Shown here: positions 16,491 through 18,269 of the stretch, piece by piece
Position numbering within the stretch: position 1 is the stretch's first letter
Layout: each line of letters opens with the position of its first letter
Sequence record: OQ722176.1
DNA: 64,000 nt
Reading direction: 5' to 3' (one strand)
Translations under genes and position numbers: made by a program
The notes under the pieces: generated by a model
Database searches by the model: none
Told to the model about the DNA's origin: nothing
Seen by the model: the letters and a program-made list of their open reading frames with translations, nothing else

Positions 16491-16611
16491 TGGTGGAGAG
16501 TGGTGGATTTGAACCACCGACAAAAAGATTTACCTAGTTAGGGTTTGCAGCATGAATGCTTATCAGAATTCTTTAACATTCTTTTGCTCTACCAGACTGA
16601 GCTAACTCTCC
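16491..16611 (-). ncRNA. tRNA-shaped RNA with ~45-nt insertion (UGCUGCAA motif)
   Basis: Acceptor+CCA, D and T arms intact; AAAAGA/UCUUUU stem encloses GAUA-loop hairpin + motif. Confidence 0.75.
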
Positions 16612-16625
16612 GTTGTAAAAACATA

Positions 16626-16751
16626 TTGATGCGGGTGCAGGATTCGAACCTGCGTCACGATCTTATGAATGATATGCGAATTGATTGCCGTACAGATTCT
16701 TATCAGAATCAGTTTTTTTGCTACGTGTGCTAACCACTACACCAACCCGCA
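16626..16751 (-). ncRNA. tRNA-shaped RNA with insertion (UACGGCAA motif), no encoded CCA
   Basis: D and T arms intact; acceptor helix extends to 19 bp. Confidence 0.7.
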
Positions 16752-17023
16752 TCAATATGTTTTCGAGTTCTTGCGCAGACCTAACGGTAATTCCCTACGC
16801 AAGAACCAGTAATCCTTGTTTTATATTGCCTTAGCTAATCACAACACAACCCAATATCGTGCGCTTTAATTACGGGATTAATGACCCGTTCGCATGTGAT
16901 TAGCGTAAAAGTATGATTACGCACCTTTTCTTCTTCAATGTCCAAGGCAAATAGAACTATGAATACTAGTGCGAGAAGATAGACAATCAAATTGCTCACC
17001 TCGCTTTGTTAGTGAGAGGACAT

Positions 17024-17146
17024 TGGTCGAGTGTAACAGAATCGAACTGTTCCCACGATCTCCCTATGATATGCGTAAATTGGTTGCTGAATATAATCAT
17101 GTCTGATTACAGTATGCTACGTGTGCTGCCACTACACCAACACTCG
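17024..17146 (-). ncRNA. tRNA-shaped RNA with insertion (UUCAGCAA motif)
   Basis: Paralogue of 16626-16751; A73-CCA; AUC-AUAGGGA-GAU anticodon-like loop. Confidence 0.75.
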
Positions 17147-17313: not shown

Positions 17314-17422
17314 ACTCATCTTCAGCAAAGAGACAGAAACGATGAGTCTAGTCTGTTTAATCAAGTTGTTCATCTTCAATGAAGAGGCGAGAACGATGAA
17401 CTCTAGCTCGCTTAATCAACTG
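17314..17422 (-). repeat. Two ~54-nt units, each an H-type RNA pseudoknot
   Basis: Six compensatory base-pair changes between units. Confidence 0.75.
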
Positions 17423-17427
17423 TGTTA

Positions 17428-17455
17428 ATCTTATCAGCTTTTCAGCGAAAGTCAA
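17428..17455 (-). promoter_or_regulatory. Early promoter
   Basis: A-tract, TTGACT-16-TAAGAT. Confidence 0.6.
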
Positions 17456-17566: not shown

Positions 17567-17830
17567 TTAAGCGGAGATGATAATACCGCTTTCAGTCTCG
17601 CCTCGTTCAAGCGCAGCGTGCTTGATTTGAAGTTGCGAAACTGCTTGTTGAAGCTCAAGAATAGCTTTGTCGTAAAGTTTGTTGTTCTCTTTAAGCAAAG
17701 TAATCTGATCGGTCTGCAAACCAACTACGTACGTCAATAGAACGACGTTTTCATCGGAGTTCAGTGATTCAGGGTCTTCTTGATACTTTCGCAGTACTGC
17801 TTCAGTAGATAAGTCAGTCATTATTTTCAA
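17567..17830 (-). CDS. Hypothetical coiled-coil protein
   Basis: ORF track; heptad pattern. Confidence 0.65.
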   Translation of the reverse strand: MKIMTDLSTEAVLRKYQEDPESLNSDENVVLLTYVVGLQTDQITLLKENNKLYDKAILELQQAVSQLQIKHAALERGETESGIIISA

Positions 17831-18269
17831 CCCAATCTAGGTCTAGTGGTTCGAGATATTCATTAACAAGACGAACTTCAGTGTTAACGGACATCGGTGT
17901 GATAGCGTCGTCATACGATAACGTGACGTGCGGTTGATAGTCAGGGTAGTCGTGAGTACCACCGATAGAGATAAGGTCTTCGTGACGCGCTACAAGAGCA
18001 GGACATGACATCTTAGCAACGACAGCGTGCTTACCGTCTTGCGTTTTCCAACAGTCAATTTGTTCGACAGTGGCAACGAAAGTGGTATCTACTACAGGCA
18101 CATCAATTTGCTTACGACTATAAAGCACAGTCACGTGAAATTTATCTGGATCTAACGGATTTTTTAAACGAAGCGTTTGTTGCAATCGAACAAGCTCTTG
18201 CTTACTCGCTTCGTCTAATCTGATACCAACGTAAGTTCCCTGACTCTCAAGGAACTTAGATAGTTTCAT
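17814..18269 (-). CDS. 57B: gp57B / anti-CBASS Acb1-family 2H phosphoesterase
   Basis: Two HxT motifs (FHVTVLYS, PHVTLSY); T4 synteny 1-57A-57B-tRNAs. Confidence 0.85.
   Translation of the reverse strand: MKLSKFLESQGTYVGIRLDEASKQELVRLQQTLRLKNPLDPDKFHVTVLYSRKQIDVPVVDTTFVATVEQIDCWKTQDGKHAVVAKMSCPALVARHEDLISIGGTHDYPDYQPHVTLSYDDAITPMSVNTEVRLVNEYLEPLDLDWVENND

Follow-up and report, generated by a model that had tools for sequence, protein, structure and literature searches.

Does the minus strand of Vibrio phage vB_VspM_VS2 carry a mimic of the bacterial type III antitoxins? The question is raised by a short tandem array in the first 64 kb of this KVP40-like relative of T4, the whole stretch of DNA that was analysed and is referred to below as the window. 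Its place on the minus strand is flanked by the T4-type genes 3, 1, 57A and 57B (57B at 17814-18269, minus strand; an 87-aa ORF comes next) on one side and, on the other, by a large tRNA cluster extending from 16107 down to 10117. The initial annotation described it as two covarying RNA pseudoknots at the start of an early transcript, possibly imitating a type III antitoxin.

The sequence and coordinates of both units agreed with that drawing (Table 1). Within each unit, a 5-bp stem 1 opens the fold and is followed by L1 of 4-5 nt, the 7-nt 5' strand of stem 2, a GUU junction, the 3' strand of stem 1, a loop of 11-12 nt and the 3' strand of stem 2. Each unit makes a module of ~43 nt with the potential to form an H-type pseudoknot. 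Tandem Repeats Finder reported the array at 17316-17432 with a period of 54, 2.1 copies and 78% matches, and the inter-unit linkers of 11-12 nt are conserved. The long loop is pyrimidine-rich, with the consensus CUCUU-N(2-4)-(U/G)GAA. The near-invariant loop and flank positions are the AA before stem 1, the C opening L1, AUC-GUU, CUCUU...GAAGAU, and the A after stem 2. The UU of the GUU junction could also pair with the AA of GAAGAU, giving a 9-bp stem 2 with a bulged G and no junction; these bases are invariant throughout. Two other pairings were rejected: the one between both TTGATTAA linkers, present in one MFE structure, is not conserved in F86 or KVP40, and a stem 2 lengthened into column 34, as RNAalifold suggested, is broken in D479, with a competing stem 1 pair that covaries.

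Table 1. Predicted features of the pseudoknot locus of vB_VspM_VS2, in minus-strand order (window coordinates).
Feature	Position	Strand	Description and basis
Promoter P1 (upstream, predicted)	17549-17522	-	TTGACT-16-TAGAAT; consensus scan; conserved in relatives
Hairpin 1	17521-17471	-	14-bp stem directly after P1; -22.9 kcal/mol, z = -5.8
Promoter P2 (predicted)	17455-17428	-	TTGACT, 16-nt spacer with TG extension, TAAGAT; sigma-70-type; consensus scan
Unit B	17419-17368	-	5' flank TTGATTAA 17419-17412; sequence and covariation
Unit B stem 1	17411-17407 with 17391-17387	-	GCGAG/CUCGC
Unit B L1	17406-17402	-	
Unit B stem 2	17401-17395 with 17374-17368	-	
Unit B GTT junction	17394-17392	-	
Unit B long loop	17386-17375	-	
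Unit A	17364-17314	-	5' flank TTGATTAA 17364-17357; sequence and covariation
Unit A stem 1	17356-17352 with 17337-17333	-	ACAGA/UCUGU
Unit A L1	17351-17348	-	
Unit A stem 2	17347-17341 with 17320-17314	-	ACUCAUC/GAUGAGU
Unit A GTT junction	17340-17338	-	
Unit A long loop	17332-17321	-	
Element C	17310-17165	-	~146 nt; ~20-bp closing stem directly after unit A, three inner hairpins
Element D	17160-17016	-	tRNA-like; D-arm-like and T-arm-like hairpins; 21-bp closing stem; covariation

The region was found in at least 50 records of KVP40-like phages, 15 of which were taken for comparison, and it was kept in every KVP40-like Vibrio phage examined, with a copy number of 1-2. Already within VS2, both bases differ between units A and B in four pairs of stem 1 and two of stem 2, the same count as first reported. 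For the wider comparison, 19 distinct units drawn from 10 phages were aligned, with a separate covariation run without D479. All 225 of the 225 pseudoknot pair cells were standard in the 19-unit alignment, with the caveat that unit A of F86, K566 and D482 has a long loop shorter by 1 nt and was given a gap by the aligner at the outermost pair of stem 1; on inspection by eye, this pair is A-U in K566 and A.C in F86 and D482. Eight of the 12 pairs changed on both sides. The covariation score was 0.60, compared to 0.24 in shuffles, none of which (0/500) equalled it, and when the partners were slid by 1-3 columns only 26-58% of the cells paired. Stem 1 of unit B, for example, reads GCGAA/UUCGC in nt-1, F86, K566 and D482. 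Stem 1 of unit A reads GCAGA/UCUGC in the ValKK3 group, and stem 2 of unit A reads UCUUAUC/GAUAAGA in F86, K566 and D482; four more stem versions came from the divergent phage D479. Both helices are proven by compensatory change, although covariation is silent on whether they form simultaneously.

The array was 87-96% identical among relatives, versus 59-92% for the flanking coding and promoter-spacer segments, and the loops, as the alignment indicates, are under strong purifying selection. A reading in which there is no RNA element at all, but a DNA-level repeat of protein binding sites, a small ORF or a chance pattern, is hardly credible. In its favour, folds of this general shape often arise by chance: matches to a loosely specified 5+7 bp pseudoknot numbered ~100 per window in shuffled sequence, and a tandem descriptor gave three chance tandem pairs, in coding DNA. 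Because such generic descriptors are too permissive, architecture alone is no proof. The nested folding energy of the units was no better than that of shuffles (z ~ -0.3), which we gave no weight either way, since a poor nested score is expected for pseudoknots. ORFs have also been annotated over the array; hypothetical proteins span the promoter and the pseudoknots in KVP40 (KVP40.0320, L001:4331-4555), VH1_2019, F86, K566, D482 and QD01, mostly on the opposite strand, as in KVP40.0320. These calls are probably artefacts, because the frames are not conserved between relatives: no conserved ORF covers the array on either strand, no frame is open in all of the phages compared, and three single-base indels between close relatives break every frame. 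A 26-codon ORF beginning in stem 2 of unit B was likewise rejected as not conserved among relatives. The preservation of pairs by compensatory change already contradicts the absence of an RNA element, and the G.U pairs fit an RNA made from the minus strand.

The order of features on the minus strand is P1, the 14-bp hairpin 1, P2, AGUUGAUUAA, unit B, AAC-UUGAUUAA, unit A, element C and element D. The promoter at 17428-17455 given in the initial annotation was recovered by the consensus scan, and its position places the predicted +1 near 17421. Its hexamers are kept among relatives and its spacer is variable, and D479 has an equivalent promoter at the same distance ahead of AGTTGATTAA and a unit. 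The spacing from the predicted start to the first unit (AGUUGAUUAA, then stem 1) is fixed in KVP40-like phages and D479. With the 19-unit covariation and the predicted promoter, the structural side of the initial proposal, an early transcript that opens with a tandem array of covarying pseudoknots, is fully supported, and more strongly than the sequence alone could have shown. The units would head a strong non-coding early transcript that runs on into tRNA-like RNAs.

Hairpin 1 forms the 5' boundary of this pseudoknot transcription unit. It is an RNA structure, because G.U pairs extend its stem in F86 and 1.081.O (a by-eye reading), and it is possibly a processing site. We also observed that it begins right at the -10 element of P1 and that its arms hold UUCAUCG and CGAUGAA, which resemble the stem 2 region of the pseudoknot units. 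On the other side of the array, element C matches no Rfam family. RNAalifold indicated compensatory changes in its closing stem and inner hairpins, and 41 of the 109 predicted pairs of elements C and D together carry such changes. An internal segment of ~70 nt of element C is missing in VH7D and R10Z. Cleavage at its closing stem, a possible site of processing, would release the pseudoknot RNA.

Element D opens a series of several tRNA-like RNAs that are transcribed the same way as the array, and its equivalent is annotated as tRNA-OTHER in phi-Grn1 and 1.081.O. It has a large insertion at the expected position of the anticodon arm and was missed by ARAGORN and Rfam; a 34-aa ORF at 16996-17100, which looks spurious, overlaps its 3' part. 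Further along, a tRNA at 16494-16675 (minus strand; Rfam, 55.8 bits) contains a 46-nt insertion in the anticodon loop and overlaps a weak match to the Y-RNA-like YrlA family (30 bits versus a threshold of 69). The record of TCU-VP03-AIR1 shows a homing endonuclease gene that starts ~460 nt past the matched region (L009:1480-1619), which marks the stretch beyond element D as variable and prone to insertions. One ~120-nt tRNA-like RNA of D479 showed ~72-74% identity in blastn to tRNA-like genes of similar size in jumbo phages of Erwinia, Pectobacterium, Yersinia and Cronobacter. In phage CBB, the homologous tRNA-like genes leave no room for an upstream unit.

Copy number varies among related phages, as the initial annotation had asked to be checked: 1.081.O has a single unit, D479 has two that are split, and most phages have two behind one promoter. 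The order in D479 is promoter, small hairpin, unit 1, second promoter, AGUUGAUUAA, unit 2, 20 nt and three tRNA-like RNAs. This locus (L265:1057-1680) contains a duplicated cassette of promoter and pseudoknot, ~110 nt long, near a major head protein gene, a setting unlike that of KVP40. In all three layouts that were read through (KVP40-like, 1.081.O and D479), the units stand ahead of tRNA-like RNAs and are co-oriented with them. Loop sequences do not differ among phages whose hosts are V. parahaemolyticus, V. alginolyticus, V. natriegens, V. harveyi, V. splendidus and V. crassostreae.

No further unit was present elsewhere in the 64-kb window or in the first 100 kb of KVP40. Searches of GenBank phages, IMG/VR and JGI metagenomes with exact patterns and blastn gave no units outside KVP40-like Vibrio phages; the tighter patterns returned only KVP40 and VH7D from IMG/VR and no genuine match from the JGI metagenomes. 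The loose pattern ATCGTT..TCTT..TGAAGAT gave chance matches among those listed in the viral scan, and in bacterial genomes the matches listed were due to chance and none came from Vibrio. Rfam had no match to the units at E up to 10, 72,556 PLSDB plasmids had none beyond three chance ones at E ≥ 1, and 5,426 E. coli genomes had none. The literature search retrieved no mention of the motif and nothing on non-coding RNAs or transcriptomes of KVP40. The motif is real, lineage-wide and, by the literature searched and Rfam, previously undescribed.

The neighbouring genes were considered as a possible guide to function. The product of the 57B gene ('57B / RNA ligase') clearly belongs to the anti-CBASS nuclease family Acb1 (Pfam E = 4e-46); its homologues occur in 1,511 phage records, mostly annotated as RNA ligase or hypothetical protein. 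An argument for an 'anti-defence island' built on this neighbour is weakened by the 57A-57B-tRNA synteny, which is general in the T4-like phages examined, three of them without tandem pseudoknots at that place, and by D479, where none of the three ORFs upstream of the units gave an Acb1-family match. Since the layouts vary and D479 lacks that match, the conserved neighbourhood consists of the early promoter, the pseudoknot and the tRNA-like RNAs, and not of the anti-CBASS gene. Elsewhere in KVP40, at 70.6-75.0 kb (L258:20639-25005), there are folE, a second GTP cyclohydrolase-like gene, and QueC-like and amidotransferase-like genes, which suggest a 7-deazaguanine pathway; no link between these genes and the pseudoknots was found.

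Type III antitoxin repeats measure ~31-62 nt, occur in 1.9-5.6 copies and lie directly downstream of a promoter; those of tenpI measure 39-57 nt in 1.9-3.0 copies (PMC3401426). The tenpI arrays often have two non-identical pseudoknot repeats with covarying stems and toxin-binding single-stranded tails (PMC12283969, PMC13682666). The phage units resemble them in being promoter-proximal, in their number of about two and length of ~50 nt, often non-identical, and in having one H-type pseudoknot per repeat with covarying stems and single-stranded tails. At 54-55 nt in ~2 copies they fall within the tenpI range, with the exceptions of 1.081.O (one unit) and D479 (units split by a promoter). Type III systems also occur in Gammaproteobacteria including Vibrio: tenpIN is present in Vibrio cholerae (PMC3401426) and a ToxN homologue in V. 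kanaloae (PMC10853763). Phages are known to counter such systems, T-even phages with a dedicated anti-ToxN factor, TifA, and another phage by amplification of a toxI-like RNA locus that lets it escape toxIN (PMC10853763).

Several features set the phage units apart. The hallmarks of tenpI and cptI are a conserved A-stretch in the long loop, which makes A-minor contacts with stem 1, and a 1-nt L1 (PMC12283969, PMC13682666), whereas the long loop of the phage units is CUCUU...GAA and their L1 has 4-5 nt. The phage units also have a 3-nt inter-stem junction, are non-contiguous in D479 and are a core, strictly conserved feature of a phage lineage. What lies downstream of them is structured RNAs, without a terminator or toxin gene: no terminator-like site was found on the minus strand between 17314 and 14070, and Pfam and PADLOC scans of nine ORFs at 14.3-18.5 kb gave no toxin family. 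No similarity to a described antitoxin RNA was detected in Rfam, PLSDB plasmids or E. coli genomes. Mutations in antitoxins often abolish toxin binding and neutralisation, whereas the loops of the phage units stay identical across hosts. Such invariance, in phages of at least six Vibrio species, is explained more simply by a conserved partner than by a patchy defence toxin with its specific antitoxin.

A parallel may also be drawn with the phage-borne toxI-like RNA, reportedly the pseudo-ToxI of Pectobacterium phage phiTE. Both are tandem RNA repeats carried by a phage without a toxin gene and able, in principle, to neutralise a type III toxin of the host. The toxI-like RNA resembles the toxI of its host, and no bacterial counterpart of the units described here was found in an incomplete search of bacterial genomes. 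The proposal of a type III antitoxin mimic is only partly supported. Its size, copy number, non-identical pseudoknot repeats and the presence of type III systems in Vibrio agree with it; a toxin gene, a terminator, the A-rich loop, the 1-nt L1 and a sequence match in the bacterial data searched are missing. The nearest known RNAs in form are the tenpI-type antitoxins, though several of their defining features fail.

As the likeliest of the readings, though at well below even confidence, we tentatively propose that the pseudoknot RNA is a trans-acting decoy that ties up an RNA-binding protein. The fixed single-stranded nucleotides, displayed on a covarying scaffold, would form the recognition surface for the protein partner, and the distinct stem sequences of both units would keep neighbouring copies from mispairing. 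The pseudoknot RNA would be cut from its precursor at the long flanking stems, accumulate early in infection and act in trans. That the target is specifically a type III toxin, which would otherwise be unleashed upon host transcription shut-off by a T4-like phage, seems unlikely. Slightly less likely still is the fullest version of the idea, in which the twin pseudoknots are an orphan, phage-borne, antitoxin-like RNA that serves the KVP40 lineage as a core decoy against RNA-binding abortive-infection toxins of Vibrio (type III or an undescribed family), and is co-made with tRNA-like decoys from one early non-coding 'anti-defence' transcript.

We count in favour of a decoy that both stems are supported by covariation, that the array is more conserved than its flanks and has no conserved ORF, that two conserved sigma-70-type promoters precede it, and that long covarying stems flank it (14 bp in hairpin 1, ~20 bp in element C). 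The tenpI-like size and copy number, the Vibrio type III systems, the phage anti-ToxN precedents and the copy number of 1-2 are counted on the same side, and the arrangement in D479, with one promoter per unit, fits selection for dosage. Counted against it are the absence of a terminator after the units, of the tenpI/cptI A-rich loop and 1-nt L1, and of relatives outside KVP40-like phages in Rfam, plasmids, E. coli genomes, IMG/VR and JGI metagenomes. The identity of the loops over six Vibrio host species points to a universally conserved partner. Moreover, the units lie upstream of co-oriented tRNA-like RNAs, a position that a role in cis explains equally well.

Such a role, in which the nascent pseudoknot acts as a leader on the machinery that makes or matures the downstream RNA, comes second, a little less likely than the decoy. 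The polymerase might be made termination-resistant over a long untranslated cluster, as by the put RNA of HK022, or the tRNA-like precursor might be stabilised or its processing guided. The HK022 put RNAs, which consist of two stem-loops, mediate processive antitermination. Like the phage units, they are short, structured, promoter-proximal and head early transcription units, one per promoter as in D479; unlike the units, they are not pseudoknots, and with no sequence or family relation only the position fits. The fixed distance of the first unit from the predicted start, the single unit per promoter in D479 and the uninterrupted path from the units to the downstream RNAs are consistent with a leader. 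So is the order, since the units precede tRNA-like RNAs in all three layouts read through, even in D479 without the Acb1 match, and the loop invariance over many hosts fits a core partner in the host. On the other hand, no unit occurs elsewhere in the window despite the tRNA cluster and other promoter-like sites, and CBB has its homologous tRNA-like genes without one, which we count for the decoy and against a general need for a leader. Two units per promoter, as in most phages, would be redundant, and the long flanking stems probably sever the units from the transcribing polymerase. With ~10 nucleotides left unpaired ahead of the fold, the 5' end would be poorly protected, and no cis-regulatory family in Rfam is similar.

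Small pseudoknot aptamers typically show covarying stems with invariant loop nucleotides, in tandem. The array shares these traits, and nucleotide-related genes occur in the phage family (the Acb1-family neighbour, and folE and the QueC-like gene in KVP40), yet an aptamer, whether it worked as a riboswitch or soaked up a metabolite or signalling nucleotide in the manner of an RNA sponge, is improbable. No Rfam riboswitch matched at E up to 10, and an expression platform is missing: there is no terminator, no ribosome-binding site or ORF lies under the 3' strand, and the downstream products are non-coding RNAs. It is more improbable still that the units mimic the acceptor/T-arm minihelix of tRNA, binding tRNA-handling enzymes or tRNA-targeting nucleases. 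Stacking of the 5- and 7-bp stems would give 12 bp followed directly 3' of stem 2 by the invariant A, and the association with tRNA-like RNAs is constant. However, CCA is absent after this A, the 3-nt GUU junction may block coaxial stacking, and models of tRNAs and tRNA-like RNAs gave no match to the units; the argument is purely geometric. Another candidate that we discarded is a translational operator of gene 32. The operator in the gene 32 mRNA of T-even phages is an H-type pseudoknot at the 5' end of the transcript, near a single-stranded sequence containing UUAA (PMC3014915). The VS2 array is similar in its fold, its place at a T4-type transcript 5' end and the nearby UUAA-containing single strand; it differs in being tandem, in having no translation start after it and in its location, between 57B and the tRNA cluster and not at gene 32. 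The gene 32 leader of KVP40 (56 nt, L257:2204-2259) has no related fold.

The twin pseudoknots are a short RNA motif with unusually clean covariation support and no Rfam family, fixed throughout a lineage of large marine Vibrio phages. Whether it works in trans or in cis, ~1 kb of structured RNAs lies beneath spurious ORFs in the genome records of the KVP40-like family. Should the RNA be a decoy, RNA-based counter-defence would have a second, independent example besides the phage toxI-like RNA, one that is evolutionarily stable, and the RNA would point to a target in Vibrio. Should it be a cis-acting leader instead, it would represent a new kind of promoter-proximal element controlling the non-coding RNA clusters of phages.
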